A stretch of DNA of 64,000 bases from Hemiscyllium ocellatum (taxonomy: Eukaryota), in NCBI RefSeq assembly GCF_020745735.1, contig NC_083425.1, forward strand, positions 23,795,575-23,859,574, given 5' to 3'. A model generated the notes under the pieces. It was given only the letters and a program-made list of their open reading frames with translations. It ran no database searches and was not told the origin of the DNA. Position numbers and translations under genes: made by a program. Shown piece by piece: positions 14,469 through 62,213 of the stretch. Position 1 is the first letter of the stretch. Each line of letters starts with the position of its first letter.

Positions 14469-14684
14469 TCACGTTTGGTGTCCACGCTGATGTAAGCTAT
14501 AGAAGTGTGCCTCCCTCAGGATCTGATTGATTTGAAAGTACGGGCCTTGTGCAGACTGTTCGTTCGAATCAGAAAACGGAAGCGTAGTCGAGCTGTTGCC
14601 TGATTTAGTATTGGCTTCAGCTGGTAAGTGTCCATTCGGTCTGTCAGGACTACTGACTATACTGCTGCTGTCACTGCTTGAGGA
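14469..14684 (-). CDS. FAM104A: FAM104A/VCF1 last coding exon (SSSSDSSSIVSSPDR...GPYFQINQILREAHFYSLHQRGHQT*)
   Basis: ttctttctgcag| acceptor, phase 0. Ser-rich linker then the conserved YFxINQxLREAHFxSL helix, the VCP/p97-binding motif. TGA at 14471-14469. Joined protein is 114 aa. Confidence 0.95.
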   Translation of the reverse strand, partial: SSSSDSSSIVSSPDRPNGHLPAEANTKSGNSSTTLPFSDSNEQSAQGPYFQINQILREAHFYSLHQRGHQT

Positions 14685-22520: not shown

Positions 22521-22534
22521 TGAGCTGCCACCAT
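22521..22534 (-). CDS. FAM104A: Candidate alternative first coding exon of FAM104A (MVAA-Q)
   Basis: caatATGG strong Kozak context, then ATG GTG GCA GCT CA|gtgaga. Phase 2, compatible with exon 2. At the edge of the CpG island. Confidence 0.45.
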
Positions 22535-22539
22535 ATTGG

Positions 22540-22564
22540 AGAGGAGGAGGAGGAGGAGGAGGAG
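22540..22564 (+). repeat. (GAG)n microsatellite
   Basis: About eight GAG units. Confidence 0.9.
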
Positions 22565-23090: not shown

Positions 23091-23107
23091 CTGCCGTCAG
23101 ATAACAT
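23091..23107 (-). CDS. FAM104A: FAM104A/VCF1 coding exon 1 (MLSDG-R)
   Basis: ATG at 23107-23105, directly after an in-frame TAG, inside the CpG island. Reads ATG TTA TCT GAC GGC AG|gtgagc. The phase-2 donor joins exon 2 to make AGG (R). Confidence 0.85.
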
Positions 23108-23639: not shown

Positions 23640-23840
23640 AACCAAAACCAAACAACTGCGGGATGCTGCTGGAAATAAAAAAATACTGGAGAAACTCAGC
23701 AGGTCAGGCAGCATCTGTGGAGAGAGAGAGAGGAACAGAGTTAATGTTTTGAGTCTTGTGACCCTTTCTCAGAACACAGAATCTGAAGTTAATATTGTTT
23801 TTCTCTCTGCACAGATGTTGAATTTCCGTTTTTGTTTTAT
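23640..23840 (-). mobile_element. Penelope-derived short inverted-repeat element inside the bidirectional promoter region
   Basis: gcatctgtggagagag ... ctctctgcacagatg inverted arms around a decayed hammerhead core. Confidence 0.65.
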
Positions 23841-23879
23841 TTACTAAAAGCCTGTAGTGTGGCTGCTTGTTCCTCCCCA

Positions 23880-24095
23880 ACATCTCTCTCCCTCTCACAA
23901 ACGCACTCTGTCACTTTCTCCTTCCGGACACTGTTCAACCTCTTCGCGCAGATGCCCCGTTCCTCCTCAGCCGGGACCTTAAAGCAGACGGACCGGATGT
24001 TCGCTCCCCGTACCGGAAGGTGTCCCACTGGATTGAGTCCGCTGTGTCTGAGAAACATTGTGCAGATGAACAAAACAGAGGTGCAGTTACTTTCC
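23880..24095 (+). other. C17orf80: Probable first exon of C17orf80 (start approximate; may be coding)
   Basis: CpG-containing segment ending at a consensus donor tcc|gtgagt (24096). In frame with the 29613 acceptor. Confidence 0.55.
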
Positions 24096-24624
24096 GTGAG
24101 TTTTAAAACGAGAGGAAGGAATGATGAATATGGTATTCAGGCCCTAAGCAGGCGGTTGCATAGAGTTTTAAGAAAATGCAAGAGTCAAATTTTTGAAATA
24201 TTTATTGCCATGATGTAACAATGTTAATAATTTTGACTTTAACACGTGAGGTTGGGAGTCAGGCTGGAGATACAATAAAAGAAGCACTGTAAGTATCTTT
24301 AAGTAGAACCATCAATGTGGTGATGTTGGATGCAGGAAAGATGTGGTCGGTGGCAGGGCTTGGGATTTGTGAGTGGATTGGGGAAAATCCCTCAACTTTT
24401 CTGGAAGAAAAAGTCGAGAAGAGACTTTCGGTGTTCAAACTCGTGGATCTGGACACACAAATAAATAGAAACTCCTTTTGGCAGAAGGTTTGGGCGAATT
24501 ATAGAACAAAAGCAAGGGAAGAAAATGTTTTTAACAGGATTAGTGGCTTGGATTTGGAACGCATTGCTTGAGTGAAGATAGATTTAATTATGGCTTTCAA
24601 TAGGTAATGGATAATTGTGAATTA

Positions 24625-29618: not shown

Positions 29619-31101
29619 ATGGAACATATTTCACCAGGAATGCAAGTGTGTCCATTTTGTGGTAAAGCTTTTAAGCGACTGAAAACACATCTTCCTCACT
29701 GTAAGGTGGCCAGAATTGTGAACAGTAAATCTAATTCTAAAGAGACAGAGCAACCTATTGCAATTCCACAGCAAAAATTAAGTTGCAAATCTGTTAGCTC
29801 TCCAGCATCATCTAACAAGAAGACAAAAGTTAAAGCAAACTCAGCAAAGACTTTAACACAGAAGGAAGAAGCAGCATCACCAAAAAAGAGCAATCATTCA
29901 ATAGGTTTAGGAAATGAATTGTGTACTTCTGTACAAAGTGTTTGGAACAAAGATATGAATGAGCCACAATCAGGTCAAGAAGATTTGATGAACAGGAGAG
30001 AGCAAATCAGAAAAAAAAGTCAACAGTCTGTTAGTCAGACAACTAAAGGACAATCTAAATGGGCAAAGAAAGAAACGGTCTTAAAATCAAAGTCAAATGA
30101 ACATTTTTTAACACTGGATGAGGATAAGGTAGATGCACAGTTAAAAGGTGCTGCTAGAGCAAAAGTGAAGAGTTCTCAAAAGATTGTAAATGATATATCT
30201 TTAAAGAAAAAACAAGAAAATAGTTCTTTAACGATTCCACTGAATGAAAAAGGATGCACTGACTTGGTATCAGAAAGTATATTTTGCCCAAAAGGGAAAT
30301 CAGTTCTTAATTTAGAACAAATTTATACTCGACCAGAATTTGAAAAGGAGACAACTGTGTTGGATCTGAAAGCCTATGAAATTGTACCTCAGCTATCTCG
30401 TGCTATCAAGTCAAATTCACTTCACTTTACGAGCCAAGAGAATGCAGATTCTCAAGATGGCATAAGATGTGAAGCCAGCCAGAATGAAATCACAGAACGG
30501 ATGGGCTCAAATACATCAGTATCTGAACGAACTCCAGTAAGCAACATCAAAACTAGTGTGTGGCATCACATTGAAAATAATTTGTGTAAAGCAAGGACCA
30601 GCGTAAAACAGGAATTTATGTTGAAAGTGAACGCAAGTGAGATAAAAGGTAGTTTTGGAGCTGATGTTTTAGAGACCAGTAAATGTAATTCTTCTGCGAA
30701 TAATCACATTTACAGTGGAATCATGACTTCTGAGCAAGTGAAGGATTTAAATAAAGAGAAAGGCAATCCAAGTATTGATCTTGTGGCTGTGAAGGGAATA
30801 GAACCAAGTGACTGGAACACAACTGGGGCCATAAAATCTGAATATGTGCATTTGTCCCAAAGAAAAAATGATTGGAAAGAAGACATGTTCTTATCAACAA
30901 GCTGCAGGAGAACAGTACGTTTGGATAAAAGGATTAAAGAACTTCACCCTAGTCTTTGCACAAAAACTGGAATAGGGATGGAGTGGTTTCCTGAACTGTA
31001 CCCAGGATACCATAGCATTGGACTGAGAATGCTTCCTGAACAAACTAAACAGTTTGAAACCCCAATCAGATTGTCTGCCACTTGGCTTGAAAAAATAAAA
31101 G
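29619..31101 (+). CDS. C17orf80: C17orf80/MTNAP1 large coding exon
   Basis: Acceptor ctttctctccag| at 29612. N-terminal CPFCGKAFKRLKTHLPHCK zinc-binding-like motif, long K/S/E-rich low-complexity region, conserved G(M/L)EWFPELYPGY motif. Donor aaag|gtacaa, phase 1. Synteny with FAM104A and CPSF4L. Confidence 0.93.
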
Positions 31102-31814
31102 GTACAATTAGTAGAATGTTTAAAATGTTTTTATCCTGGTTCTGCCATGTTTGATTTGTCTACTGTGACATGACTTAATTGGACATTTGTGATATTTGCT
31201 TTGGGGAAAATAATTTTCAATAATTCAAAATATAAAGTTAATTATTTAATTTCATATTTTGTCATAATCATATTTCTCTTTCTCTACCCTCTGTTTTGCT
31301 GACTGTTGTCAACTTTGCCTTATTGTGGATGTTCAGGTAGTTAAATATTTTACATTAAAAGATGTCATTTCTCTAACTTCTCAATGGCTCAGCCAAACAC
31401 AGCGCATATTTATGGAGGTTGTTGTACCATGCCAAATTGGTTTGTTTTGGTCCAGTGGGTGCAAGCACATGCTATTCCCTTTTCCATCAAGGATATATTT
31501 AAACTGTTGCTTCCTACAAATCTGCAGAAGTGAAATGTCCAAATTACTTCACAGGATTAGACAGGTAGCCTGGAAATCCAAAAATGAATTGGGTTATTGT
31601 TTGCATTGGGTAGTCACTTTTATACATCTTTCTTGATTTGTGCAACTATGTTGAACTTAAGTACTATTTCATGTAATGTTCTTTGAGATTGCGCCATATT
31701 TTTCTTGCATGCCTTGAATCTTTAACGAAGTAATATCCGCAATATTTGCACACTGACAAATGAAATTATATCAACAAAAGTCGACGTCTATTGTTGTGTA
31801 AATCACATTTTCAT

Positions 31815-31897
31815 TTAGAATAGATTACTTACAGTGTGGAAACAGGCCCTTCAGCCCAACAAGTCCACACCGACTCGCCGAAGCGCAACCCACCCAA
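31815..31897 (-). mobile_element. HE1-like SINE 3' fragment
   Basis: tagattacttacagtgtggaaacaggcccttc...gcgcaacccaccc. Confidence 0.85.
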
Positions 31898-33453
31898 TTT
31901 AATTTTGAAATTTGGTGCAGTATTCCCTTTGCTAATACTGCTATAAGTGTCTTTTGGCTTGAAGTATATCTATGTTGACCTATTTGTGTCATGTGTCTTT
32001 TGTGATCAGTTCATGTTGCTGTTATTGATCCATTTCAGCCTGCTCTCAATTTTCCTTAATTAAATCTCCCAGCATAATCCTCTATTTCCTTCTCATCTGC
32101 TTGTCTAGATTCCTCTCAAATGTACAATTTACTTTACCGACTCCCAATGATATCCAAAATTCTTTGCTTTTTCTTTTGAAGTCATTTTGATGATGTGCCT
32201 TGGATAAACTATTCTATTGGTAAAGTGAAAGCAAAATTGCATCCATTTTGCAAGTTATGTTTATGCAGTGAGTTGCTAAGTTTTTGTATGTAGACACTGT
32301 TTCAAAGGGGAGTCATTATCCAAATATGTTCTGTGTAATTTGCTTGCATTGTGACTGGAACAGAAGTAGGATGTAGTGTGGGTGTCAGTGGTTTTGTTTT
32401 GTTTTGTTTAATCAGTCATGGGATGTTGGGTATCACAGGCTGGACCAGATGCTGTGGGTCTGGTATCACATGTAGGCCAGACCCCAGGTAAGGATGGCAG
32501 ATTTCCTTTCTGAAAGGACATTAGTGAACCAGATGAGCTTTTCATTAAACTGTTATTTCCAGATTATTATTATTGAATTCAAACTCCAACATCTGCCATG
32601 GCAGGATTTGAACCCATGCCCTCTCAACATTACCTGGATCTCTGGATTAATAGTATAATGATAATACCACTAGTTCATTACCTGCCCCTTTGTTTTGTTG
32701 TTCAAATAAAGCCATTGGTCTCTTGTTGAAATAATCTCACTGTGTACATAGGTGGTGGTATAAAGTGGGAGGAATTGGATACAGTAAACTACATGTCCGT
32801 AGACTAAACAGAACACAAGATCTCAGCTTTCATATTTATTAGCACTAATGACAGACGATCCTTCAGGTGCACTCAGCCCTATGAAAACAGATTATGTAAT
32901 CCTGTTACAAAATTCCAATGAATTAATAATCTAAATTTTAATTTTTTTTTGACCTCATGATGATCCCAAATGTTTTGCAGGCAACTAATGTAGGAAATAC
33001 AGAAGCATATTTGTGTTTGAAACGCTCCTGCTAGATTAACCTCTCTTTAATAATGTCACACAGGATAAATGTTGAGCAGGACCTCACTGGGGAGAATTCC
33101 CCCACCTTTAAAATAGTGCAATGGGGTTTTTTGCATTGATTTGAAAGGCCGTGGTTTAATGGCACAGGTCTTCTGGTGCTAAGATTGACTAGGACCTGCA
33201 ACAGTACAACATTCCCTCAGTCTGTGGGTTGGAATTTGAACTTGCAATTTTCTGCCTGAAAGGGGAGAATTACAAAAGTAGTTCTGATCAAAAGCTGGCA
33301 ATCGATTGCTGATTGGCATTACATAACGAGTAACAGCCTGCTTCATAGGCGGCAAGTTTCTTCAGGGAAATGGTTAAAAATAGGAGAACATTAGAGAAGA
33401 AATGAAGTTGTCCGTAAAACAGAAGTAATATTTTTTAAACTTACTTCCTGCAG

Positions 33454-33570
33454 GTTATAATAAGTATTGCAATAAATATATGAACCCAAGGAGAAGAGGA
33501 GCTGGAGGTGTGATCGCTTTAGTTTTGGGATGTGCGCTCTTCAGCTACATTTGGAATTATGATTTGATCA
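33454..33570 (+). CDS. C17orf80: C17orf80 exon with ATP synthase subunit f-like (WRW-family) transmembrane segment (GYNKYCNKYMNPRRRGAGGVIALVLGCALFSYIWNYDLI)
   Basis: cttcctgcag| acceptor and tca|gtgagt donor, 117 nt, phase 1-1. Contains a hydrophobic helix. Confidence 0.92.
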
Positions 33571-33839
33571 GTGAGTACATCGGTGTCTTTTGACAGATGT
33601 TGGGATATCGGAGAGAAATACTGTTAATTATATTCCATTATGGTGTTAACATTATGTTTCTATTGATCTCATTAGTGTCCAAATGACCACAAACTAACAT
33701 CTGTTTTTCATGTCATCGCATCCCCACCCCTTTGTTTTAAAGAAAAGACCAAGTAGCCACTCCTGTTCAGCCTGTTAGTAAGGGAAGTTGGTGCTAAAAT
33801 CCATTAATGCTTTAACAGCTGTTGAAACCTTTGTTTTAG

Positions 33840-33868
33840 AACATGATTACAGAAGAAAATACCATTGA
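33840..33868 (+). CDS. C17orf80: C17orf80 last coding exon (KHDYRRKYH*)
   Basis: tttgttttag| acceptor, phase 1, TGA at 33866-33868. RKYH* end is the same as subunit f. Total 542 aa from ATG 29619. Confidence 0.9.
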
Positions 33869-36694: not shown

Positions 36695-37462
36695 ACCAAT
36701 GACAGACTGGTTAACAAGGTTAGGTCACATGGCATACAGGCAGAACTAGCCATTTGGATACAGAACTGGCTCAAAGGTAGAAGACAGAGGGTGGTGGTGG
36801 TGGAGGGTAGTTTTTCAGACTGGAGGCCTGTGACCAGTGGAGTGCCACAAGGATTGGTGCTTGTCCACTACTTTTCGTCATTTATATAAATGATTTGGAT
36901 GTGAACATAAGAGGTGTAGTTAGTAAATTTGCAGATGACACCAAAATTGGAAGTGTAGTGGATAGTGAAGAAGGTTACCTCAGATTACACCAGGATCTTG
37001 ATCAGATGGGCAAATAGGCTGAGAGTGGCAGGTGGAGTTTAATTTAGATAAATGTGAGGGAATTTGGGAAAGCAAATCTTAGCAGGACTTATACACTTAA
37101 TGGTAAGGCCTTAGGGAGTGTTCCTGAACAAAGAGACCTTGGAGTGCAGGTTCATAGCTCCTTGAAAGTGAAGTCGCAGGTAGATAGGATAGTAAAAAAG
37201 GCATTTGGTATGCTTGCCTTTATTGGTCAGAGTACTGACTGTAGGAGTTGGGCATGCAATTCTGGTCTCCTTCCTATCGGAAGGATGTTGTGAAACTTGA
37301 AAAGGTTCAGAAAAGATTACAAGAATGTTGCCAGGGTTGAAGGATTTGAGCTATAGGGAGAGGCTGAATAGGCTGAGGCTGTTTTCCCTGGAGTGTCGAA
37401 GGCTGAGGGGTGACCTCATAGAGGTTTACAAAATCAGGAGGGGCATGGATAGGGTAAATAGA
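36695..37462 (+). mobile_element. HER1/CR1 RT fragment
   Basis: WIQNWL..RRQRVVV, SGVPQG, KFADDTK and RLRGDLIEVYKI motifs, with frameshifts. Confidence 0.9.
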
Positions 37463-38370
37463 CATAAATGGGTCCAAAGGCATGAATCAGAAAATGTCAC
37501 TATACACATTCAGCAGGCAATTGAAAAGACAAATAGAATATTGTCCTTAAATTCAAAGGGAATTAAGTATATAGATAGTAAGGTCTAACTTAATCTGTAC
37601 AAGGCACTATTTAGACCACGCCCAGTACACTGAACATTTTTGGATTCATTATCTAAGGAAGCATATAATGACATCAGAGGTGGTCGAGAGAATATTCTCC
37701 GGGTTAATTCCAAGTGTGGAAAGATTGTTTTTAAGGTAATGTTATAAAGGTGTAGAGGTGTACTGTACCTTTAAGAGTTGACAAACTGAACAAACCAAGA
37801 ACATAACACTTGGTTGAAACAAATAGCTGCAGCTGAGTTGTTATGAAACAAAAACAAATTTCGAATTCAGCCAGTTTAAAATTATTCCCCAACACCAAAC
37901 TCCAATCAAAATTTGAATTTAGTATTTTCATAATATTAAAGCCAATGAAATAATCTGATGTTTTGGAGTGTACAACCAGACATTTTGAACAGCAAAGACA
38001 GCACCAACAAACAGACTGCTAGCTGAAGAGCTATCTATAAGACATTTGTGCAGCAGAACATCAAAGCTGAGCTAGAGAAAAATCTATAGTGGAAAAGCTA
38101 AAAAGGAGAATTGTCAAAGCTGATTGGTTTTTGAAAGGAGACTTTTTTGTAAATCTTAATAGGGATTTTTAAAAAAAATCAGATCAGTATTATATAGTGA
38201 GAGGTAAACAATAGGTTCAAGAGAAAGGAGTTGTAAATAATTGTTGGTTTTAATATTCTCTGTTGGCCTCTGGGATAGTTTGTTACCTTTCAAATTTTAA
38301 TAGATTACGGCACGAGGTGAGCTTTTTCTGTGTGGCTGGTTTAAATTAGCAGAGGGGTTTACCCAACTCG

Positions 38371-40593
38371 GTGACTTTTACTTTAGTGATGGAGAGGGAT
38401 AATCGTGCGCCGCAGGGCAAGAGCTATAGCTGGGGGCAGGGAAATTATGATGCAGTGAGGCATGACTTAGGTTGTGTGGATTGGAAAAACAGGCTTCAAG
38501 AGAAGAACACTAATGAGATGTGGGGATTGTTCAAGGAGCAGCTACTGCGTGTCCTCGATAGGTATGTACCAGTCAGGCATGGTGTAAAGGGCCTTGTGAG
38601 GCAGCCGTGGTTTAGTAAGGAATTGGAGTCCCTTGTGAAAGGGAAGAAGGCGGCATATGTAAAGATGAGGCGTGAAGGTTCAGTAGGGGCGATTGAGAGT
38701 TATAAGGTAGCCAGGAAGGAGCTAAAGAGGGAGCTAAGAAAAGCGAGAAGAGGACATGAAAAGTCTTTAGCTGGTAGGATTAGGGAAAACCCAAAGGCTT
38801 TCTATAGGTATGTCAAGAATAAAAGGATGACTAGGGTAGGTATCGGTCCAGTCAAGGATAGTAGTGGGAAGTTGTGTGTGGAGGCGGAGGAGATTGGAGA
38901 GACATTAAATCAGTACTTTTCATCAGTATTCACTCAGGAACAGGACACTGTTGCTGATGTGAATATGGAGTCACAAATAATTAGAATGGATGCCCTGGAA
39001 ATATGCAGGGAAGAGGTTTTGGGAATATTGGAAAGGATGAATATAGATAAGTCTCCTGGGCCTGATGGCATTTACCCCAGGATCCTATGGGAAGCTAGGG
39101 AGGAGATAGCAGAGCCATTGGCCTGGATTTTTATGTCGTCATTGTCAACGGGAATAGTACCAGAGGACTGGAGGATAGCGAATGTGGTCCCATTGTTCAA
39201 GAAAGGGAGTAGGGATAGCCCTAGTAACTATAGGCCAGTGAGTCTGACTTCAGTGGTGGGCAAAGTCTTAGAGAGAATGGTAAGGGATAAGATTTATGAA
39301 CATCTGGGTAGGAATAACGTGATCAGGGATAGCCAGCATGGTTTTGTGAAGGGCAGGTCGTGCCTCACAAACCTTATTGAGTTCTTTGAGAAGGTGACTA
39401 AGGAAGTGGATGAGGGTAAAGCAGTAGATGTTGTGTATATGGATTTTAGTAAGGCGTTCGATAAGGTTCCCCATGGTAGGCTAATGCTAAAACTTCGGAG
39501 GTATGGCATTGAGGATACATTAGAGGTTTGGATTAGGAATTGGCTGGCTGGAAGGAGACAGAGGGTAGTAGTTGATGGATTATGTTCATCTTGGAGCGCA
39601 GTTACTAGCGGTGTACCACAAGGATCTGTTTTGGGACCATTGCTTTTTGTTATCTTTATAAATGATCTAGAGGAAGGACTTGAAAGCTGGGTAAGCAAGT
39701 TTGCGGATGACACGAAAGTCGGTGGAGTTGTGGATAGTGAGGAAGGAAGTGGTAGGTTACAGCGGGATATAGATAAGTTGCAGAGCTGGGCGGAAATGTG
39801 GCAAATGGAATTCAATGTAGCTAAGTGCGAAGTCGTTCACTTTGGTAGGAATAACAAGATGATGGATTACTGGGCTAATGGTAGGCTACTTGGTAGTGTG
39901 GATGAGCAGAGGGATCTTGGTGTCTATGTACACAGATCTCTGAAAGTTGCCACCCAGGTAAATAGTGCTGTGAGGAAGGCATATGGTGTACTGGGCTTTA
40001 TTGGCAGAGGAATTGAGTTCCGGAGTCCTGAGGTCATGTTGCAGTTGTATAAGACTCTGGTGAGGCCTCATCTGGAGTATTGTGTGCAGTTTTGGTCGCC
40101 ATACTATAGGAAGGATGTGGAAGCTTTAGAACGAGTGCAGAGGAGGTTTACCAGGATGTTGCCTGGAATGGTGGGAAGATCGTATGAGGAAAGGCTGAGG
40201 CACTTGGGGCTGTTCTCATTGGAGAAGAGAAGGTTTAGGGGAGATCTGATAGAAGTGTATAAGATGATTAGGGGTTTAGATAGGGTAGATACTAAGAACC
40301 TTTTACCGCTAATGGAGTCAGGTGTTACTAGGGGACATAGCTTTAAATTAAGGGGTGGTAGGTATAGGACAGATGTTAGGGGTAGATTCTTCACACAGCG
40401 GGTTGTGAGTTCATGGAATGCCCTGCCCGTATCAGTGGTGAACTCTCCTTCTTTATGTTCATTTAAGCGGGCATTGGATAGGCATTTGAAAGTTATTGGG
40501 CTAGTATAGGTTAGGTAGGACTCGGTCGGCGCAACATCGAGGGCCGAAGGGCCTGTACTGCGCTGTATCCTTCTATGTTCTATATGTTCTATG
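38371..40593 (+). mobile_element. Young 5'-truncated CR1 LINE with an uninterrupted 712-codon ORF2 fragment (38371-40509)
   Basis: KSPGPDGI, NYRPVSL, QHGF, DFSKAFD, GVPQGSVLGP and KFADD motifs with no stop or frameshift. 3' UTR and (TTCTATG)-type tail. Inserted at the end of the gypsy 5' LTR. Confidence 0.96.
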
Positions 40594-43387
40594 TATCATG
40601 AAGATTTAGGGGCTCATCGCCAGGATTTGAACAGTTTGGGTCTTGGATTCATGGTTTGAACAGGTTTAGATAGATCCGTTCTAGATTTGGACAGATTGAA
40701 TAGATTTGGGTTCTGAAGAAAGCCTAGTAGATTTAAACACTTGCAGATTAGTCTCCTAGATCTTTAGATTAAACGTAGGTGAGACAATTTGTTTAATTTC
40801 AGTGACTTGCGGTTGGTTAAATTAGAAGTGAGAGAAATGGTTGTTAAAATTGCTAAAGAGGTTCTGGAGTTTGAAGATAATTCTCAAATTTGCCAAGGAA
40901 ATTTAGAAGGAAAGAAAAAGGACATACGTTTAGAATTAACAAATAAGTTAGATTTGGGTTCAACTAAGGACAAAAGTAAAGCTGAAATTGTAGGGGAATT
41001 GTTCAAACACTTAGATGTGTCAAAGAAACAGACAAGTGCAGTAGAGTTAGAAAAACAAATTACAATTGAGGAAAATGGAGTTAGAAGATAAACAAAGGGA
41101 GAAAGAGAAAGAGAGAGAAGAGAGGGAGGAAAAAAGAAAGAGAGGCAGTTCTTAGCTGAGCAAAAAAAGAGAATTTGAACTTGAGAAGTTGTGACTTAGT
41201 CAGCAAAGTCAAGCTAACAGGATGAAGATTAAAGGGTATACTGGGTATACAAATATGTCAAAACTCTGCTACATTTTGATGAGAAAGATGTTGACGCCTT
41301 CTTTATTTCATTTGAAAAGTTGGCTAGGCAGATGGAGTGGTCCGAGGATTTATGGGTAATGCCATTTCAGACCAAACTGGTAGGCAGAGCTAGCGAGGTA
41401 TTTGCTGTGCTGTCAGATGAGGGGTCAAGAGATTATGAAGAGGTCAAACAGACTTATGAATTGGTACCAGAAGCATATAGAAAGCGGTTCAGAAACTCAA
41501 AGGAGGAACCAGGTCGGACTTATGTTGAGTTTGAAAGAATTAAACATAGTCATTTTGATAGATGGGTGTGGGCTTTAAAGATAGATAGGATCTATGAGGC
41601 TCTAAGGGAGGTTATTTTGGTGGAGGAGTTTTAAAACTCACTTCCAAAGTTGGTAAGAATTGATGTGACAGAGTAGAAGGTTCAGGAAATGAGAAGGGCA
41701 GCAGAATTAGCAGGTGAATACATATTGGTGCATAAGGCAAGCTTCTGGCCAGAATTTCATCCTGCGAAGGATAGAAATTGGGAGATGGAGATCCTGCACT
41801 ACGAAAGAAAGAGTAGAGAGCACTGGTAAGAGTTTACCACAAGTTAAAGATGCCTAAGAGGATGGAAAGAAGGTGAAAGGCCTCAGCTGTTTTCACTGTG
41901 GTAAAGTGGGACACGTAAAGTCACAGTGTTGGTTGTTAAAGAAAGGCACTGTGGGAAAAGATGTGGTAAAAGAAACTAAGCCAGTGGCAATAGTGAAAGT
42001 AGTAAAGGAGACCCAAGAAAAGCCAAGGAATGCAGGAGTGTGTTACAGCCTGGGCAGGGGCTGGGTATGGAGTTAGTACCTGATCTCTACAAAGAATTTA
42101 TCTCCGTGGGTAAAGTTTACTCAGCAAGAACAGGGGGAGAAGGGCACAAAGTTATAATTTTGAGAGATACAGAATCTAACCAGTCACTGATAGTCAGAGA
42201 ATAGCAAATTTGCACTCCTTCTGATTTGTTATTTGAGAGTATGGCAATTTGTGGGATAGATTGACAGAAATTTAGTGTTCCCCTTTGTCAGATCAGGTTG
42301 AAGTGCCAACTCAAGACTGGGGAAATAACAGTGGGAATGATTAACAGAGTGTCAGTTCCAGGAACGATTTAGCAGGGTCCAAGGTGGGAGTGACACCCCT
42401 TATTGTGGAGAAGCCCAAGGAAGATCAAGAGACTGAGTAGTTAAAACAGAAATATCCTGGTATTTTCCCGTACTGTATAGTAACTAGATCCCACTATCGT
42501 AAGTTACAGCACTTTAAATCCAGTGTGAATCATCCTGAATCCCAGGGAGCATTAGGAAAGTGACATCAGACCTTAAAGACCATATTGAGAGCATGCAGTC
42601 AGGATTATCCAAATGATTGGGATAAAGCTATCCCATTCATTTTGTTTGTCATTGGAGATGTCCCAAATAAATCTACTCAGTTCGCTCCTTTGAGTTTAAT
42701 ATTGGAGCATAAAATAAGGGGCCCTTTGAAATTACTTAAAGAGAAATTGACAGGACCAAAGTTGAAGATCTCACACTTAATTATGTATCGGAGGTCAGAG
42801 GTCAGGGAGAGATTAAATTGTGTAGGCGAGTTAGCTAAACAGCCTTAAAGAAGGCATAGCATAGAATGAAGCAAATGACACAAAAACCCAGAGACTCGGA
42901 TGTTTTCCCTAGGGGATGACATGTTTGTACTGTTACCAGTGATAGGAGATCCCAAAGGTAGGTTTAGTGGTCTCTATCAAATTGAGAAAAAGTTGAGTCA
43001 GGTGAACTCTCTCAAAGATGCCAGATAGAAAGAAACTGTATCGGGTGTGTCAATGTGAACATATTGAAGCTGTATTATACTAGAGAGAAAGAATTGGAGA
43101 AACAGGTGTTAGTGATTGCCCCACAGAGTGAGGAACCAAATCCAAATGTTGTGGATTTTGATGTTCCTCAAAATATTTTTAAAAATGAACAAGTCCTCGG
43201 GAGTGGGATAGATTAGTAAACTATCTGTCACAAGAACAAAGAACTGCAGTATGAGGACCATATGTAAGGAATACTGCTCCAATAAAACAACACCTCTATT
43301 GGCTTAGTCCTTTCAAAGCCAGGCAGGTCCAAAAGGAGGTGGACACCATGCTCAATGAGGATATCGTCGAGCTGAGCAAGGCAGGAA

Positions 43388-52227: not shown

Positions 52228-52321
52228 TGTGAAAGTTTACATGCTGTTCCTTCAGGGCAGTAACCAGCCAGATAATTCTCACAGATTATCTTCCTGGTGT
52301 GTTTGTTTTTGCACAGTGGGC
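52228..52321 (-). CDS. CPSF4L: CPSF4L exon 5 (GPLCKNKHTRKIICENYLAGYCPEGTACKLS-H)
   Basis: ggcag| and ca|gtaagt, 94 nt. ZF4 and ZF5 motifs. Confidence 0.94.
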
Positions 52322-52737
52322 CTGCCACAGAAATAGATCAGTGGAGTGAATTTTGTAAACTATATTGTCAATTCACACTACTTTTGCAAAATTAAAATTT
52401 ATGCATGCACATCTTTTAAAAAATGTCAATGCATTGTCATTAGTTCCCAGTTGTTATTTTTGCAAAAAAAAAGAGTATAGAAGGTCCATCCCTACATTCA
52501 GGCTGTTCAATAATCTGATGTACTAAAGCCAAGCAATTTACAAAAGTCACACAAGGTCAGTCTAGATGCCATGACTATTGTGAGTTTAGCCCTCTGCTTA
52601 CAATTGACACAGCTCTTAGTTCCCAATATACAATTTACCAGTAATAAACATAGCAAAAGAACTATTCATTCAGCAAGTGAAACTTAATTTTGGTTTGAAG
52701 GGAAAATAAAATTACTTCAAAATGCAAAGCTGATAAT

Positions 52738-52768
<31 letters not shown>

Positions 52769-53679
52769 TCAACATTCTCAATGGATTGTAAACTGGAAAG
52801 ACTACCTGTAATAATTGAGATCAAATAAGATACCTCAAACTCTGGAAGTTTACATCTGTGTCAAAAAACATTAGTTTGCTCTTTCTATTGAACCCTTTCT
52901 GGAGGATCTGAAGTATCAACTTACATTATTGCTCTTGAAATGATGGACCTGCTGCAGAAGTAATTTCTATTTTTATATTTGAAAATGTATGAAGACAGAT
53001 TCAAGATGGGTTTGAGAAACATATGGAAACTTACTATAATAATCATAATACAAATAGAGACGACAACAAAATCAAAAATATACTAAAAAAAAAGGATAAA
53101 AGGGTTGAATACACAATTTATTAAAGATAGAGATGTGTTCTAAACTACTCTATCTTCACCTTAAGCTTCAATCAAATTGGATCAAACAGTTTAATGAAAA
53201 CTGAAAACAGTTTCTTTAGATTGTGTCTCAAGGTTTCCAATTCTCCCAATTTCATCATTAATCAGATCAGAACTATTTTCTCTTTGATGTTACTTGTTAA
53301 TGCAAGAGTTTTCAGCATTCATCAGAAATGTTGTCCACTCTACTTTGTGTTATGTACATGCTGTTTCCGATTGAGAAAACGTGGTAACCAAGCTAGCAAG
53401 ACATTTTATGCTTGTTTACAAACTATGAAATTTCCAATGATTCAGTCTGTAGAAATTGAAGCTATTTATTCCTTTGGAGGAAAGTTCATGAACTACAGGA
53501 TACTGACTTGATCTGATTGGGGTGAACAACAAAAAGGAGAACAAACCATTTTAATGCAGTGAGTGATTATAGTTTGGAAATGAGAGAGCATGGAAGAGAC
53601 AGATTCAATGGATCTTTCAAAAGAAAAAAAAATCAGAATTAACTGAAAAAGAATGAAAATTACAGGGCACCTCAGCTAT

Positions 53680-55197
53680 AGATCATCTCTGCAGGGTAGT
53701 GCCCAAGGCCCAACCATCTTCAGTTGCTCCAATGACCTTCCCTCCACCATAAGGTTAGGTCAGATGTGGGGATGTTCAACAATGATTGCACAATTTTCAG
53801 CACCATTCGCAACTTCAGATACTGAAGCAGTCCATGTTCAATATATTAGGATCTGGACAATGTCCAGGCTTGGGCTGACAAGTGGCAAGTAATACTCCCA
53901 CCACAAAAGTGCCAGGCAATGACCATCTCCCATAAGAGACAATTGAATCACTGCCCCCTGACATTCAATGGTATTACTATCACTGAACCCTCCATTATCA
54001 GCATCCTTGGGGTTATCACTGACCAGAAACTCACCACATGACAATGGCTGCAAAAGCAGGTCAGAGGAATAGGAATACGATGGTGAGTAATAGGAAAGAT
54101 ACAGAGGCTTTGGAGAGGGCGCAAAGAAGATTTACCGGGATGCTGCCTGGACTGGAGGGCTTGCTGTAAGAAAGTTTGAATAAGCTCAGACTTGTCTCTC
54201 TGGAGAGAAGAAGGAGGAAGAGAGGAAACCTGATTGAGATGTACAAAATAATGAGGAATAGATTGAGTCAATAGCCAGAGACTTTTCCCCACGGCAGGAG
54301 TGACTGGTACGAGAAGTCATAGTTTGAAGATATTAGGAAGAAGGTATAAAAGGAGTCAGAGGTAGGTTCTTTACACAGTTGTGAATGCATTGCCAGTTGA
54401 GGTGGTGGAAGTGAAGTCTTTGGGGACATATAAGCGACTGCTGGACATGCACATGGATAGCAGAGAGTTGAGGGGTGCGTAGGTTAAGTTACTATATTTT
54501 ACATTCGGATTAAGTCTCAGCACAACATAGTGGGCCAAAGGGCCTGTTCTGTGCTGTACTTTTCTATGTTCTACGTAACTCTAAATCCTGTCTACCTTCT
54601 ATAAGGCACAAATCAGGAATGTGATGGAAACCGCTCACCTGCCTGGATCAGTGTAGCTCCAACAACATTCAAAAAGCTTTAAAACAAGTATTTTCATAGA
54701 CACCACATACACAAGCATCCACTCCCTCCACTACCAATGCTCAGTAGCAGCAGTGTGTAGTATCTACAAGATGCACTGCAAAAATTCTTCAACCTCCAGA
54801 CCACAGACCACTTCCATCTAGTAGGAAGAGGGCAGCTGATACATGGGAACACCACCATCCCACATTGAATGTCAAGGGGCAGTGGTTCAATTGTCTCTTA
54901 TTGGAGATGGTCATTGCCTGGCACTTTTGTGGTGTGAATATCACTTGCCACTTGTCAACCCAAGCCTGGATATTGTCCAGATCCTAATATATTGAGGCAC
55001 TCACCATCTGGACTTGGAAATAGATAGTTCTTAATTCACTGCTGTTGGATCAAAATCCCAGAATCCCCTCCCCAAGGAGTAATGAGAGTCAACCTACAGC
55101 ACATGGACTGTAGCAGTTCATCTTCTGAAGGGCAGCTGGGGACAGGCAATAAGTGCTGGCCAGCCAGTAATGTACACAGTCCATCAGTGAATAAAAA
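53680..55197 (+). mobile_element. Decayed CR1/L2-clade LINE 3' part with a nested CR1 (about 54085-54575) and an internal inverted duplication
   Basis: QGS..GPTIFSC remnant and a gaataaaaaaaa tail. The nested copy ends in ttctatgttcta. Confidence 0.7.
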
Positions 55198-55742
55198 AAA
55201 CACTGCAGGTGAGTAGCAAACTATTTCTGTTGATAAACAGCAGGAGGATTGAACACAATAATATAGTGCTAATTGCTCTGCAGATGACCAGCATGAGTTA
55301 AAACAGTTTATTTTTAGATACTTCTATAGAAGTAAACAGCGGCAGTTAAACTCATTAATATAATATGGAATAATCCTGCAGGAGTGTAAAAATGTTTTCT
55401 AGAGAATTAAGAGGGTGCTGGTCAGAATTTGGACTGTGAAGGACATTTAAAAAGTGGTCATGAGTCGTGGACATTGCTGACATTTATTGTCCACCTCGAA
55501 TTGTCCTCAAGGGGGTAGTAGTGAGCTGACTTCTTGAATCACTGCAGTCCTTATGAAGTACCTCCCCAGTGCTGTTTGGAGAAAATTCTAGGATTTCAAC
55601 AGCAGCAGAGAGAGAACAGCAATATAGTTTGTTATAGTCAGAATGTTTGTGCTCAAAGATGAATTCACATTTGTAGCAGTAGAGAATTAGTAACAAGGCC
55701 AGTATTGAGCAAAATGAAAAATTAAAGTCTGCAGTTACTTAC

Positions 55743-55838
55743 CATATTTACAGAACCCTCGGTCATACCAGGGGCAGTCTGGAATTTGTATCCGCGAATT
55801 GATGTGTAGGAAAGGACACTCTTGCTTATTGCATTCAC
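55743..55838 (-). CDS. CPSF4L: CPSF4L exon 4 (GECNKQECPFLHINSRIQIPDCPWYDRGFCKY)
   Basis: cacag| and atg|gtaagt, 96 nt. ZF3 and ZF4 motifs. Confidence 0.95.
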
Positions 55839-56380
55839 CTGTGTCCAAAATAGGCAAGTCATGTGACTCAGTATGGCCTGTGCCCCAATATTATTATTTG
55901 TATTTAAAAGGATGGAGAAGATTTTGACTGAAATGCACCATATTGAAGATTTAAATCTTAGTAGGACTCTGGGAAGGTGTCAAGAAAAAGAAGATGCATG
56001 GATTCCCAGATATGGACAGATTGAACAAGCCCTGCTGCTTTGAAAATGGAAGAGGTTGTAACAAAATTTATTTAAATCTCCTCCCCCAATGATTCTTTTG
56101 GCCTATTCAGAATTGCTATGGATTCCTCATTCTCAATCCCTTATCATTTTAAGGGAGCAACAGTACAAGTATTGTAAGACAGGTTTATAAATGCAATTTC
56201 TTCCATATTTATTTCCTTGCCCTATGCCTGAAGGCAGCATCTCATGCTGGGGAAAAGAGCCACAAGTTACAACATTTTTTCCAGCACCTTGGTCAAGATC
56301 CTTTCAGTGTGTGTGAAATTTAAAAGCACGGCCTAGATTTTCACTATCATCCTAAGTCAAATGTTTTTCCCCTACAAGTG

Positions 56381-56510
56381 GGTAAAAACAATGACTACAG
56401 ATGCTGGAAACCAGATTCTGGATTAGTGGTGCTGGAAAAGCACAGCAGTTCAGCCAGCACCCAAGGAACAGGAAAAATTGACATTTTGGGCAAAAGCCCT
56501 TCATCATGGA
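56381..56510 (-). mobile_element. Penelope-type terminal repeat with a decayed hammerhead motif
   Basis: Minus strand ATGATGA-A-GGGC-TTTT-GCCC-AAAAT-GTC. Same family as 62972-63113. Confidence 0.75.
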
Positions 56511-57670
56511 TTCCAGGATAAGCACCAATCAAAACATCTACCAACATCTGCCCATAATTTCTGACCATTTATTTATTTGAAAAGTAAGAGAGCAAAAAAG
56601 GTCATTTTCCAATAGGTGCTCCAAGCAACAGAAACAAAATGCTGGGCAAAAAAAAAAAATCAGCAAGTCTGGAGGCATGTGGTGAGAGAAACAGAGTTAG
56701 TGCTTAGAGTCCAGCATGCCTCTTCAGAACTCCCTGCAGTTGAATCTGTGCAGCCATCCCCAATCCTAGTTTCGCTCAATCTTCATGATTATGGATAAAA
56801 CCTTAACTGATGCCTCCCATCCTCCATTGTGCCACCTTAGAGGGGCAGACCATGATGGAACTTTAAATGTTTGCAGTCTTTGCAATTTAATTCCACACCA
56901 AATGGCATTTGCCCACTAAAGTATTTGAAAACCCAAACAGTATTATCCAAGCCCTCAAAAGATGTGAACAATGGTGAATTATTTGGTAAAACATGACAGA
57001 TTGGAAATATTTGCTTATCCATTTCGATACAAAAAGTCTGACTTTGCACTAAGGGTTTGAATGGAGACATGAGAATCTTGCAAGTGAATGCAAAGGCAGA
57101 CTTGCATGTATTAACATCCTTTGTTAAAATTCAGGTCAATTATTCAAAAATGTACTTTTATGTAAAACATCAGACCAGTGATTTGCTCTTGCAATGTTGT
57201 CAGTTAGAAATTGTACCAAAAATGTAAACCAGGATTTTCCAGAAACACTAACCAACTAACTTTTCCATTTTATGTATTTCCCAGTCAGTATAAGAATCAA
57301 TGATGTACATTCAGACTTATTTTGTCAATGACCGTTTTCCAGTGTACCGATTTTAAAGTGATCTAGTTAACGGGCAGAAACTCTAGCTAAAACAGGAAAT
57401 ATTCTGATCTTCATTTGTCGGGCTCAACATTAATTGCAATTATTTCTGTAAGCTTCTATGCTTTCTACAGACCACCTCAATTCTGGAGTTCTTTCAGATC
57501 TTTCCATATTTGATGAATGACTACTTGAGACTTCAGCCCTTGGCATCACATGTCAGGCATCATTTTTTTCATGTCAAAGTTATGTATAGAAATAAATATA
57601 CTGTGATCTCATTGAGTGGCAGAGTTGAAGGGCTGAATGGTCTACATCTGCTCTTGTTTTATTGGCTTAC

Positions 57671-57823
57671 CATATTTTGAATAGAAGTAGCATCGTGGCA
57701 TCTTGGTCTCATCATACTCATGCAAAAACTCACACTGGTCTCCTTTTTTACACAGGCTTCGGAGCCAGTGTTTGCATACAACATTCTTGTCACCACACGT
57801 GTGTCGAAATGGGCACATTTGTT
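57671..57823 (-). CDS. CPSF4L: CPSF4L exon 3 (EQMCPFRH...VCKHWLRSLCKKGDQCEFLHEYDETKMPRCYFYSKY)
   Basis: ttgtag| and atg|gtaagc, 153 nt. CCCH ZF2 nearly identical to CPSF30. Confidence 0.96.
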
Positions 57824-59194
57824 CTACAATTAACAAAGACTGTTATAGTTACAAGTGGAGATTCACTGGAACAAAAGTAGTGTTATAAAGAAAGGAGAGA
57901 GATTCAGTTTGGTGATGCCTATTATGAGATGATGATATGGAAAGCTTCTCTAATGATCCTGCAATACTAGTAAGAAAACCAAGTTAACATTTACCATTAC
58001 AGCAACACAGCAAGTTTGAACATAGATATTGTAATGTGAAAACTAGTTAGCAATTATCGGTTTAGTAAATAATATCAAATATTGCCTGAATATTTGATAT
58101 AGTAATGAATTGTCAATTTACACGATAAAAAATCATTTTCGAGGTTTGTTTTAAATATTTCCATAATTTTCTAAAATTCAATTTTTGTTTTAAATCACAG
58201 GACACCATCCCAGTTACTGAAGAAATGAAGGCAACCTTATTTTGTGATCACTGCCAGGGTTTAATTGCATATGGAGATTCACTTCTATAGTAACTGGCCT
58301 CAGTTTTAGAGTTCAACTGGACATTGAATAAAAATTGTTTATTCAATGACGAAAGGTGGGCACGGGGAGACTGATTTGAAACAAACAAAGTCTCTTTGCC
58401 ACGATATCAGATTATACATAGTCAAGTATTTCCATCCAGCTCAGTTGGGGAAGTGGGAAAGTTTTACAGGCCAAGTTTTTAAAGAAGTAAATGGGGTAAA
58501 GCTGGTTAAACCCTTGAATATACTTGATTAACTATCCCCCAAGGGTTGTAACTGGGGATAAAAGTAAAAGTCTACAATTTATTTTCAATAATATATTTCT
58601 GAAAAAAAGGCTAAGCTGTAATAATTTTATTAAAATAGATACTTAATTATTGTGGACAAAACCTTAACTAAAATGTTCTTTTTCCTCCAGTGTGCCACCT
58701 TAGAGGGGCAGATTGTCATTTCATTATGGTCAAATTATTATCTCACTACTCCCTACATTGATGCTTTCACAATACTACACACCAACAATTCTATATTATA
58801 ATTATTTTGACAATACCATAGCTTTAAGAAGTGCATTTTGTCCTCCCCCTCCCAATCTATTTGACTGAATTTGCCTTTGTTAAGGGTGTGGTTATGGGAT
58901 GTTACTATATTAGAAGTGTTAATTAGTAGTACTGAATACATATTCTTTTGATAAACATTTCAGTTACAGTTAAACCATTTTTTTTATTCTTAAACCACAC
59001 AGTTAAAACACTGACAAAATAAAAATGAAGTATGTTTTTCTTAATTTGCATCTGGAATGCATTTTACCTTTAAGAGAAAAAAGGTTAGGGTTTAGGCTAT
59101 CCTAACATACTTTGAAGGGGTTTGGCCTAGTCGAATACATTTTTTTTTCCTGGAAATTCGTGAAGGAGAGAGTTATGTATTTTGTTTTACTAAA

Positions 59195-59510
59195 TCAGAA
59201 CACCTACAGTATGGAAGCAGTCCATTGGGCCCACACTAACCTTCCAAAGAGCATCTGACCCATGCTCCTACCCTATCCTTATAATCCCACATTTTCACTG
59301 GCTAATCCACCTAGCCTGCACGTCCCAGACACTTGGCAATTTAACATGGCCAATCCACTTGCACATTTTGGGCTATGGGAGGAAACTGGAGAGGAAACTC
59401 AGGCAAACATAAACAGAATGTGTAAATTCCACACAGACAGTTGCCATAGGATGCAATCAAATTCAGTCCCTGTTACTGTGAAGCAGTAATGCTAACTACT
59501 GAGCCACTGT
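59195..59510 (-). mobile_element. HE1-like SINE, decayed
   Basis: Family similarity to the other copies. Confidence 0.8.
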
Positions 59511-59828
59511 GGTGATCACCAATGAAAAGAGCAATTCTGAAAATGCAGTGGTCAAAGTGGCTGGTGATAAATGGAACTGCTTTAAAATAAATAACAATTC
59601 CACTTTGCATCAGTCACATTATAAAACAGACTTAGTGTGCAGATCAACATTTCCCTTGCCACATATTAATGACATGGTCACAGATCATTCCAAACTACAC
59701 TTGCTTAAGTTTTCATTCAAGATTCAAAATTGATTCAGCCCAATTCTATAACTGATGGCAGTTCTATTTATCAACAAGGGATTGCATCTCAATACTTGAA
59801 TGATGTTTTTGTTTCATTAGTATCTTAC

Positions 59829-59879
59829 CTTTTAAGCATTTACCTTTAATGAAAAGCTCACAAACAGCTGAACTAGATC
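59829..59879 (-). CDS. CPSF4L: CPSF4L exon 2 (RSSSAVCELFIKGKCLK, start of ZF1)
   Basis: tttctttgcag| and aag|gtaaga, 51 nt, phase 1-1. Confidence 0.93.
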
Positions 59880-60884
59880 CTGCAAAGAAAGATCACAATA
59901 TTTATAGGGAACTCAAGACTACTATTACTGGCATATATTTCACTATCCATGAGCTTTTTTATACAGCACTTTGCTTAAATGGATTTCTCACATCTTTGTT
60001 AATACACAATACTAACTTTTTTTCCCCCGCTCACACCTATTAAGAGCTAACATTTTATACCATTCGTCTAGCTGTTCCAGTTTTGTATTACAGGGACACC
60101 AACTACCTTACAAACTTAGAACAATGTCCTAGTGTACACTGAAGATGTTGAGCTTTTATTGTGCTGATACAAACCTAAGCATCTAGTATTTTAGCCATAC
60201 CTTCATCAAGATGCACTTCATAAGCAAGTGCTTAAATAATTTGCCAAAATTCATACTAGTAACAATTGCATTCACATAACTTAAATTTTCATTTTTTTAA
60301 TCTGGAGTGCACCATTTACCTTTTTATTATTAAATGCACATCTATAATCAAAGATCCAAGAGTAAAACGATAAAGTAATATCTTAAATACAAGTTGGAAT
60401 GTTTCTGGTGTCAAAGGGAGGAGAACTATCCAGTTTATTTTTAATATTTCTTGCTGCCCAACCTGCAAGGTTTGGTCATTTTCTCTTAGGGAATTAGCTA
60501 GCAGGAGTCAGTTGAAAAAAAGAAAAATCGCTCCCCATCAAGAAACCAAACTGGCTGGTGAATCATCCGGAGTGCCACAGTGTACTCTAGATTTGAGATA
60601 ATGTAAAGTTTTAGGTTGTTTACAGTCAGCCAACTCTAGGCCAATCATCCTGGAGCCTACCCAGTCCCTACTAAGAGCCTAAAGCCCAATCTCCATTTCC
60701 AACAAAGGCATTAGAATTCTCTAATTGAGATAAATACTTAAATTGCTGAATAGTTTGGAACCAAAATCATGAACTGCCATTTTGTTGTATGATGCAGTCA
60801 TTAAGTAGCATCAGGTTCTATTTATTTATTAATTAGAACTCAAGTCCTAATTAATTTAAAAACTCAAGTCACATCTGCTGAAAT

Positions 60885-61157
60885 TGATTAGTTTAGTTAC
60901 ACTGTAGAAACAGGCCCTTTGGCCCAACAAGTCCACACTGACCCACCAAAGCGCAACCCACTCACCTAACATTACAGGCAATTTAGCTTGGCCAATTCAC
61001 CTAACCTGCACATTTTTGGACTGTGGGAGGAAACCAGAGCAAACCCATGCAGACACAGGGAGAATGTGCAAACTTCACACAGTCAGTCACCCGAGGTGGG
61101 AACTGAACCAAGGTCTCTGGCACAGTGAGGCAGCAGTGCTAACGACTGTGCTGCCCA
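60885..61157 (-). mobile_element. HE1-like SINE
   Basis: Family similarity to the other copies. Confidence 0.88.
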
Positions 61158-62110
61158 TCTTTCAATCTAGTCCTCTTTCTAGAAAAAAATTCAAAACCCT
61201 CACTTTAAAAAAAAATCATGAACACTTACAAGGGCAAAATAAACATTGATACAGGGATTCAGACTTACAGGAGTTTGGCCAAGGGGAAATATCTTGTTAT
61301 TAACTTTCATGGCATCATTGAGATTGTCATCAACTTTAAGTGTTTGAAACTCCATTTCAAAGTATTGGGTGAAATTTGAACAAGTGAACAACAGGATAAT
61401 TTATTATAGGTCAAGGCATAATCTTCCTTCAACAATTTCAGATATCAGAAAATATTACCTTTAAACCTTTCCTAAAGACTGATCTCTTTCAGGCACAAAG
61501 CAGCCTGTAAAGAAAAACACACAGTCTCTCACTTGCCCAGAGAGTTCAGCTCCAACAACATTCAAGAAGATCAATATCATCCAATACAAAGAAACCCACA
61601 AATCCACTGCACATATCCATTGCAGTGCACTGATCTAGTGTACACCACCCACATGCACCATCTTACCATGACTCCTTTCACAGCACCAACTACTGCTAAA
61701 AGGACAAAGGCAGTAGGTGACTTGGGAGCACCACCACCTGCAAGTTTCCATTAGCATCTGACCCAATTCAATTTCCAAAATAGCTTTTCATTGTCCTGCA
61801 TCAACAGCCCAGAACTCCCTAATAGTGCTACAGGTTTGGCTACACCACATAGACTGCAGTAGTTCAAGAAGGCAACTCACCATTACCTTCACAGACAATT
61901 AATGCTGGCCTTACCTTGAAGGGATTAAAAGAAAAGCAAACAAGAAAAAACAAGAATATAAGAGTTGAACAGTGAAATTTGTGTCAAATACAATTACATT
62001 TTTATGACCGTGAAAACAATGGAATGCTTTCTAAATAATTAAGGCAATTATGCACAAGAATGAGTTTCTCCCCCCCAAGTTTTATTTTCAGATGACAAGG
62101 AACTCCTTAC

Positions 62111-62213
62111 TATCCATGCCAGAAAATGGCAAATCCATAATTCCTCTCTGTTGCTCCAGAACAACTTCAAAATCAAATCTCATCATCTGTAAACCAGCTA
62201 CCAACTCTTGCAT
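62111..62213 (-). CDS. CPSF4L: CPSF4L coding exon 1 (MQELVAGLQMMRFDFEVVLEQQRGIMDLPFSGMD)
   Basis: aagATG start, 103 nt, a|gtaagg donor. Resembles the CPSF4 N-terminus MQEIIASVDHIKFDLEIAVEQQLGAQPLPFPGMD. Confidence 0.92.

Follow-up and report, generated by a model that had tools for sequence, protein, structure and literature searches.

The locus analyzed here, a window of 64,000 nucleotides of DNA from the shark Hemiscyllium ocellatum, raises the question of how a gene for a mitochondrial nucleoid-associated protein came to end in a stretch resembling subunit f of ATP synthase (ATP5MF), and what part such a stretch may still play in a shark. The homology as such is already known (PMC10445727, UniRef, Pfam). 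The C-terminus of C17orf80 (MTNAP1) was matched to ATP5MF by HHpred at E 2.6e-15, and its orthologues were defined by a zinc finger combined with an f-like domain, being traced as far as cartilaginous fish and not into jawless vertebrates (Potter et al., 2023; PMC10445727); UniRef names many of these orthologues "ATP synthase (membrane) subunit f". The human protein is associated with mitochondrial nucleoids and located at the inner membrane and in the matrix (PMC10445727, PMC10484793), its nucleoid association and inner-membrane attachment being also the subject of Wu et al. (2023; PMC10484793). It resists carbonate extraction, with the C-terminus holding the protein at the inner membrane, and its incorporation into complex V was reported as negative (PMC10445727). 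CPSF4L, paralogues and ohnologs are unmentioned in the C17orf80/MTNAP1 literature that we searched, and no statement of an origin by duplication with a swapped exon was found in it. What the present analysis adds is evidence on the origin of the gene, from its exons and from a two-gene block, and the loss of an exon in elasmobranchs.

The window, which is free of N, contains the following features of MTNAP1 and of its upstream neighbor:

14481..14648, minus strand: last exon of FAM104A/VCF1 (tblastx to the quail locus; Pfam FAM104, E 5.9e-12)
23928..24101, plus strand: upstream (first) exon of MTNAP1 (tblastn with residues 3-60 of a Chiloscyllium punctatum isoform, 90% identity)
29619..31101, plus strand: coding part of the large exon of MTNAP1 (open reading frame of 494 codons and the first base of Gly495)
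29649..29702, plus strand: CCHC zinc finger, Cys-x2-Cys-x9-His-x3-Cys, residues 11-28 (from the translation)
30969..31037, plus strand: MTNAP1-specific motif G-I-G-M-E-W-F-P-E-L-Y-P-G-Y...M-L-P, residues 451-473 (from an alignment of 13 orthologues)
31102..33453, plus strand: intron at the expected site of a 108-nt exon (exon and relic searches negative)
33454..33570, plus strand: 117-nt exon, phase 1 at both ends, equivalent to ATP5MF exon 3 (sequence, Pfam and PDB matches)
33498..33554, plus strand: predicted transmembrane helix, residues 510-528 (Kyte-Doolittle)
33840..33868, plus strand: last coding piece of 29 nt including TGA (26 coding bases), equivalent to ATP5MF exon 4 (acceptor TTTTAG)

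The reading frame of the large exon starts at the ATG at 29619 and reaches 31101, the first base of a codon, after which the sequence continues as GTACAA (GT donor at 31102), i.e., the exon ends in phase 1. A pyrimidine tract and CAG stand before the 117-nt exon, GTGAGT comes after it, and the junction codons are restored as G + GT (Gly) and A + AA (Lys). All MTNAP1 junctions considered here are in phase 1, and the spliced product has 542 residues, of which the last two exons account for 48. Both the two exons proposed by the first-pass annotation (117 nt, phase 1-1, and 29 nt) and its 48-residue peptide could be reproduced, the former from splice sites and frame and the latter, in 48 of 48 residues, from the translations of 33454-33570 and 33840-33868; the junctions 31101>33454 and 33570>33840 are also used in the gene models of nine other elasmobranchs. 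The 117-nt exon encodes a membrane-surface stretch and the transmembrane helix, which has the highest hydrophobicity of any 19-residue segment in the protein (Kyte-Doolittle mean 1.84) and aligns with the helix of subunit f, and the 29-nt piece encodes the tail K-H-D-Y-R-R-K-Y-H. At the other end of the gene, the first exon falls in a stretch rich in G+C between 22 and 24 kb (GC 0.54 in 22001-24000). When the donor of the 117-nt exon is left unused, the frame continues for seven codons (S-E-Y-I-G-V-F) to a stop (33571-33594, plus strand); the whale-shark (Rhincodon) MTNAP1 model ends by such read-through, and the last exon is also missing from some models of frogs and lizards, so that an MTNAP1 isoform lacking the K-H...R-K-Y-H tail may exist.

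The identity of the gene is indicated by its matches as well as by its neighborhood. The large exon is 93% identical to an MTNAP1-like protein of Chiloscyllium punctatum and 36-75% identical to other cartilaginous-fish orthologues, and 19 of its matches (E from 0 to 1e-64) are named C17orf80 homolog, mitochondrial nucleoid-associated protein 1(-like) or si:dkey-21c1.4. The motif near the end of this exon is conserved from shark to lizard and lies outside the f module. A Pfam search of the large exon, with a profile set that does not include PF28519 (MTNAP1_ZnF), returned nothing relevant; PF28519 is present on orthologues of the window gene, and the spacing of the zinc finger equals that described for C17orf80 (PMC10445727). 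FAM104A is found upstream of MTNAP1 on the opposite strand, as it is in sawfish and quail, and the window order of FAM104A, MTNAP1 and a probable CPSF4L has its counterpart in sawfish. On these grounds the gene is identified as the shark orthologue of MTNAP1/C17orf80, in line with the name that it had been given initially.

With respect to the origin of this gene, most informative is the comparison of coding exons. Those of ATP5MF measure 16/108/117/29 nt in tarpon, all in phase 1, and the same lengths and phase are found in frog; paddlefish MTNAP1 consists of a large exon ending in phase 1 followed by exons of 108/117/29 nt, and MTNAP1 of the window shark of a large exon ending in phase 1 followed by 117/29 nt. 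With a profile HMM, the 108-nt exon is also recognized in quail MTNAP1 and wheatear ATP5MF. The previously proposed equality of the 117/29-nt phase-1 pattern with that of ATP5MF thus agrees with intron positions in tarpon and frog. Based on exon lengths and phases, MTNAP1 can be described as ATP5MF in which the first short coding exon has been exchanged for an exon encoding a zinc finger and a disordered region, and the suggestion that an ATP5MF duplicate gained such a long exon, here in place of the short first one, is strongly supported by the exon comparison. Hence, a genomic duplicate with a swapped first exon, rather than a shuffled domain, is the strongly supported reading of these gene structures. 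The possibility that MTNAP1 is a retrocopy of ATP5MF was also considered and is ruled out because the introns are kept.

The second line of evidence comes from the gene on the other side of MTNAP1, the 3' end of which faces the 3' end of MTNAP1 in the window (tail-to-tail):

52236..62213, minus strand: first five coding exons of a CPSF4-family gene (similarity)
62213-62106, about 59877-59827, 57818-57666, 55839-55741 and 52322-52236, minus strand: the individual exons of this gene

Exon 3 of this gene matches human CPSF4 chains at E 5e-34 with 44 of 51 residues identical, and CCCH fingers are present. Its 3' exons, including the C-terminal zinc-knuckle exon, were not found by similarity in the window, and a search with the C-terminal parts of CPSF4 and CPSF4L against 45000-52300 gave no significant match. 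The interval between the two genes harbors an intact 712-codon reverse-transcriptase frame of a LINE-like element (38371-40509, plus strand; Pfam RVT_1, E 5e-35), with LINE-like fragments around 37250-37460, and the same element family occurs in the paddlefish and sawfish loci. G/C skew in the window takes opposite signs, about -0.3 at 4001-10000 and +0.4 at 38001-42000, the latter stretch coinciding with the LINE element.

Per exon, the CPSF4-family gene of the window is 50-82% identical to CPSF4, as compared to 94-100% for true orthologues. Likewise, the exons of the gene next to ATP5MF in tarpon share 94-100% identity with bird CPSF4, whereas the neighbors of MTNAP1 in paddlefish and in the window reach 50-88%. 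In the tree, the paddlefish neighbor falls within the clade of named CPSF4L proteins (SH-aLRT 95), and the window gene, with a long branch of 0.73-0.76 vs. 0.01-0.06 for CPSF4 orthologues, is unplaced when unconstrained; in AU tests, its placement with CPSF4L gave a slightly better likelihood (p-AU 0.62), and its placement with CPSF4 cost 5.3 lnL units (p-AU 0.053). The minus-strand neighbor is, most likely, a divergent CPSF4 paralogue, namely CPSF4L, as judged by these identities and likelihoods. Both trees put a turtle (Chelydra serpentina) protein, which UniRef calls CPSF4, together with the CPSF4L clade, and this name is probably wrong.

The arrangement recurs at both kinds of loci. In tarpon, the tail-to-tail partner of ATP5MF is a gene for a 267-aa CCCH/CCHC protein, beyond which BUD31 is found; the wheatear locus reads PDAP1-BUD31-PTCD1-CPSF4 and then ATP5MF; and MTNAP1 faces a CCCH gene tail-to-tail in paddlefish, sawfish and the window. 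No neighbor gene was found in the frog ATP5MF flank, and at the mite CPSF4 locus, inspected for linkage to ATP5MF, a WRW neighbor is absent, which is uninformative on ancient linkage. The quail locus (L006, 12334-17742) has no CPSF4L called between MTNAP1 and CDC42EP4, and birds may have lost this gene. The three claims made by the first-pass annotation on the neighborhood, i.e., that ATP5MF lies tail-to-tail with CPSF4 (seen in tarpon and wheatear), that the neighbor in the window is CPSF4L (probable, since per-exon identity indicates a divergent CPSF4 paralogue and the AU tests favor CPSF4L) and that the C17orf80-CPSF4L pair mirrors the ATP5MF-CPSF4 pair (real by comparison of neighbors across loci), are supported. 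The duplication of a two-gene block, ATP5MF together with CPSF4, at the origin of MTNAP1 is well supported by these gene orders and comparisons.

As to how the block was copied, human 7q22/7p22 and 17q24-q25 have many duplicated gene pairs in common, and an origin of the MTNAP1-CPSF4L block in whole-genome duplication, making these genes ohnologs, is plausible. The competing view, according to which a local or segmental duplication, and neither of the two vertebrate whole-genome duplications, copied the ATP5MF-CPSF4 block and the paralogues are not ohnologs, draws on the fact that just two genes are shown to be common to both loci and that the other neighbors differ (BUD31/PTCD1/PDAP1 vs. FAM104A/COG1/CDC42EP4). 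It runs against the duplicated pairs shared by the two human regions and against the reported restriction of the family to jawed vertebrates, which fits the timing of genome duplication (PMC10445727), and we regard it as a minority reading, rather unlikely to be the right one.

In the layout of its coding exons, the shark gene differs from the paddlefish one by the 108-nt exon. In an alignment of 13 MTNAP1 orthologues and four ATP5MF proteins, non-elasmobranch orthologues show the conserved motif, then a short linker and then a complete f module, with the part encoded by the 108-nt exon retained in chimaera, paddlefish and quail. This exon, which covers the matrix half of f (about 37 residues), is missing from the window as well as from nine of nine elasmobranch orthologues, in all of which the large exon joins the 117-nt exon directly. 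Chimaera and shark can be aligned without gaps over the final 19 residues of the large exon, which are colinear, so the large exon ends at one place in both. Within the window intron (31102-33453), tblastn with eight exon-2 peptides produced only chance-level matches, the best of them (32569-32616, E 0.3) being a chance match inside an apparent tRNA-derived repeat, and the profile HMM of the 108-nt exon, which scores 53-64 bits at five other loci, had zero matches; its sole match in the window (0.6 bits, 21606-21653) is outside the gene. The 108-nt exon thus appears, from predicted gene models, to have been lost in frame in sharks and rays, although a cryptic exon of rare use may exist in the window species. 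The description of the shark module as a "near-canonical" subunit f does not hold in this respect: only the C-terminal half is present, and the near-canonical f module of cartilaginous fish, as far as these models tell, is that of chimaera and not that of the shark.

Several observations accompany this intron and the exon preceding it. The repeat at 32560-32660 (plus strand) was recognized as tRNA-derived by eye. In the sawfish MTNAP1 intron (L007, 12397-12432), near the expected site of the lost exon, a match of 13 residues to exon 2 of ATP5MF, interrupted by an in-frame stop (W-I-S-R-stop-F-T-A-N-G-S-I; tblastn E 0.07, unsupported by the exon HMM) may be a decayed exon relic or a chance similarity. 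Two readings of the end of the large exon were tried and rejected. Its last 60 residues, taken as subunit f, gave no match to subunit f in PDB and chance matches to antibody frameworks; as a fused exon 2, the same region is assigned by the alignment to the MTNAP1-specific motif instead.

Comparison across vertebrates reveals a graded conservation of the f module. With a full-length ATP5MF HMM, chimaera MTNAP1 scores 131 bits (positions 3-88), MTNAP1 of reptiles, birds, amphibians and ray-finned fish mostly 82-121 bits (about 3-88; one python isoform 66), mammalian MTNAP1 15-50 bits (up to about 3-86, several with the C-terminal part only) and elasmobranch MTNAP1 10-61 bits (mostly 38/40-88, a Rhincodon read-through isoform from 32), with 44 bits (positions 40-88) for the window gene. 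With an HMM restricted to the tail, the corresponding values are 110 bits for ATP5MF against itself, 91 for chimaera, 74-84 for other non-mammals (ray-finned fish, amphibians, reptiles, birds), 50 for the window, a median of 46 for elasmobranchs and 30 (range 22-42) for mammals. The shark tail is more eroded than the tails of chimaera, ray-finned fish, amphibians, reptiles and birds, and less than that of mammals; these scores bear out the earlier statement that the mammalian tail is the more diverged of the two. Over the last 84 residues, MTNAP1 of chimaera, paddlefish, frog, turtle, bird and skink shares 45-54 identities with fish and frog ATP5MF, to be compared with 54-55 of 84 between tarpon and mammalian ATP5MF. 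Anchoring alone does not easily account for a constraint of this strength on the module, kept up for more than 400 million years.

What is left of subunit f in the shark is recognizable and incomplete. The 48-residue tail matches the Pfam WRW family (PF10206) at E 6.9e-5 over profile positions 60-100 of 102, its score of 23.6 bits falling just short of the gathering score for Pfam membership (26.5) because only the last 41 of the 102 profile positions are present; precomputed Pfam assignments list WRW for MTNAP1 of chimaera, ray-finned fish, frog, reptile and bird, and for no elasmobranch or mammal. The tail also matches eight distinct solved subunit-f sequences, best of all the human chain 8h9f_R (E 5.4e-7, residues 46-93 of 93), to which it aligns end to end with coinciding C-termini. 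Both the transmembrane helix and the C-terminal tail of subunit f ending in R-K-Y-H are present in the window gene. Ungapped, 18-22 of 48 residues are identical to mammalian ATP5MF and 24-26 to frog and tarpon ATP5MF. The homology of the tail to ATP5MF claimed at the outset is accordingly well founded in the Pfam WRW and solved-chain matches, and the count of about 19 identities given with it was right. At the same time, the window gene keeps 13 of 22 near-invariant ATP5MF tail positions, as compared with 18-21 in other non-mammalian vertebrates; the nine changed positions include a Val-to-Pro replacement and a tyrosine in the helix.

Our preferred reading is that the shark tail is, most likely, an inner-membrane anchor, by analogy with the protein in human cells, and that the half-module probably does not function in ATP synthase in place of subunit f. 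Two points fit less well: the retention of the K-H...R-K-Y-H ending and of 13 of the 22 near-invariant positions goes beyond what a generic anchor would need, and the finding, reported in a 2026 preprint, that the C-terminus of human C17orf80, when tagged, lies in the matrix fits poorly with a simple membrane-spanning tail. The main competing idea, already put forward by the first-pass annotation, is that the shark tail inserts in the subunit-f site of ATP synthase, replacing ATP5MF or sitting beside it, and tethers nucleoids to the ATP synthase rows of cristae. It is favored by a tail that ends as subunit f does, with 24-26 identities out of 48 to fish and frog ATP5MF, by the closeness of the non-mammalian, non-elasmobranch modules (45-54 of 84) to the fish-mammal range of ATP5MF itself (54-55 of 84), pointing to shared constraints, and by a 2025 preprint in which knock-down of C17ORF80 caused defects of cristae and respiration and the same tether idea was raised; on the other hand, that knock-down left ATP synthase assembly unchanged on native gels, and sharks have neither the 37-residue matrix half of f nor nine of the 22 near-invariant positions, including those of the Val-to-Pro change and the helix tyrosine. 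With the matrix half gone and the tail eroded, sharks make a weak case for docking at the f site, and this claim, not supported by the present comparison, appears to us very doubtful. Finally, a chance or convergent likeness between two short hydrophobic tails, for which one could cite the mere 48 matched residues and the Pfam score below the gathering threshold, has a negligible probability in view of the end-to-end alignment with solved structures (E 5e-7), a maximum of 12 (mean 3.7) identities of 48 in 20,000 shuffles vs. 26 observed, exon lengths and phases equal to those of ATP5MF and the match of the chimaera orthologue to ATP5MF (E 1e-30, 62% identity), and is already refuted, on our reading, by the identity of intron positions and the graded series of orthologues.

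Taken together, the block-duplication and anchor reading can be laid out as a sequence of events that we consider probable as a whole. In an early jawed vertebrate, a block of ATP5MF tail-to-tail with CPSF4 would have been duplicated, the CPSF4 copy giving rise to CPSF4L. In the ATP5MF copy, a long exon that specifies a CCHC zinc finger plus a disordered region would have taken the place of the first coding exon of 16 nt, with exons 2-4 of ATP5MF (108, 117 and 29 nt, phase 1) retained. Elasmobranchs would later have dropped the 108-nt exon in frame, which would leave the shark protein with the C-terminal half of f, i.e., the membrane-surface stretch, the transmembrane helix and the nine-residue tail. 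This half-module would serve mainly as a C-terminal inner-membrane anchor, with the zinc-finger and disordered part located in the matrix near mtDNA.

Outside elasmobranchs and mammals, the strength of the module constraint keeps the idea of an alternative subunit f alive. In its full form, MTNAP1 of chimaera, ray-finned fish, amphibians, reptiles and birds would be a true alternative subunit f, inserting into ATP synthase and linking mtDNA nucleoids to cristae, the link having been relaxed independently in elasmobranchs (by exon loss) and in mammals (by sequence decay); we consider this extension unlikely, and, if true, it would explain the absent complex V interaction in human-cell experiments. 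The f module is degraded by sequence decay in mammals and by exon loss in sharks, and in fish, frogs, reptiles and birds it is still constrained much as ATP5MF is. Given where the module is weakened, the question of MTNAP1 in ATP synthase is better suited to zebrafish, Xenopus and chicken than to human cells.

A comparison with known systems places the window gene within an established family, to which it adds no new kind of system. Like human and other vertebrate MTNAP1, it has a CCHC finger, a poorly conserved long middle, the E-W-F-P-E-L-Y-P motif and an f-homologous C-terminus with a transmembrane helix, and it is flanked by FAM104A and a probable CPSF4L; unlike other MTNAP1 genes, the elasmobranch gene is devoid of the 108-nt exon that encodes the N-terminal half of f. 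The closest non-elasmobranch orthologue, that of the chimaera Callorhinchus milii (A0A4W3JPR0), shares with it 36% identity over the large exon and a colinear end of this exon, but has, unlike the shark, a complete f module with 62% identity to frog ATP5MF (E 1e-30). With ATP5MF itself (8H9F chain R) the window gene has in common the end-to-end alignment of the last 48 residues, the 117 + 29 nt exons in phase 1 and the tail-to-tail position next to a CPSF4-family gene, and it departs from ATP5MF in the length of the protein (542 vs. about 89 residues), the missing matrix half and the score below the Pfam gathering level. The minus-strand gene, in turn, is far more diverged than CPSF4 orthologues, and it shares with CPSF4 both the exon pattern and the CCCH fingers.
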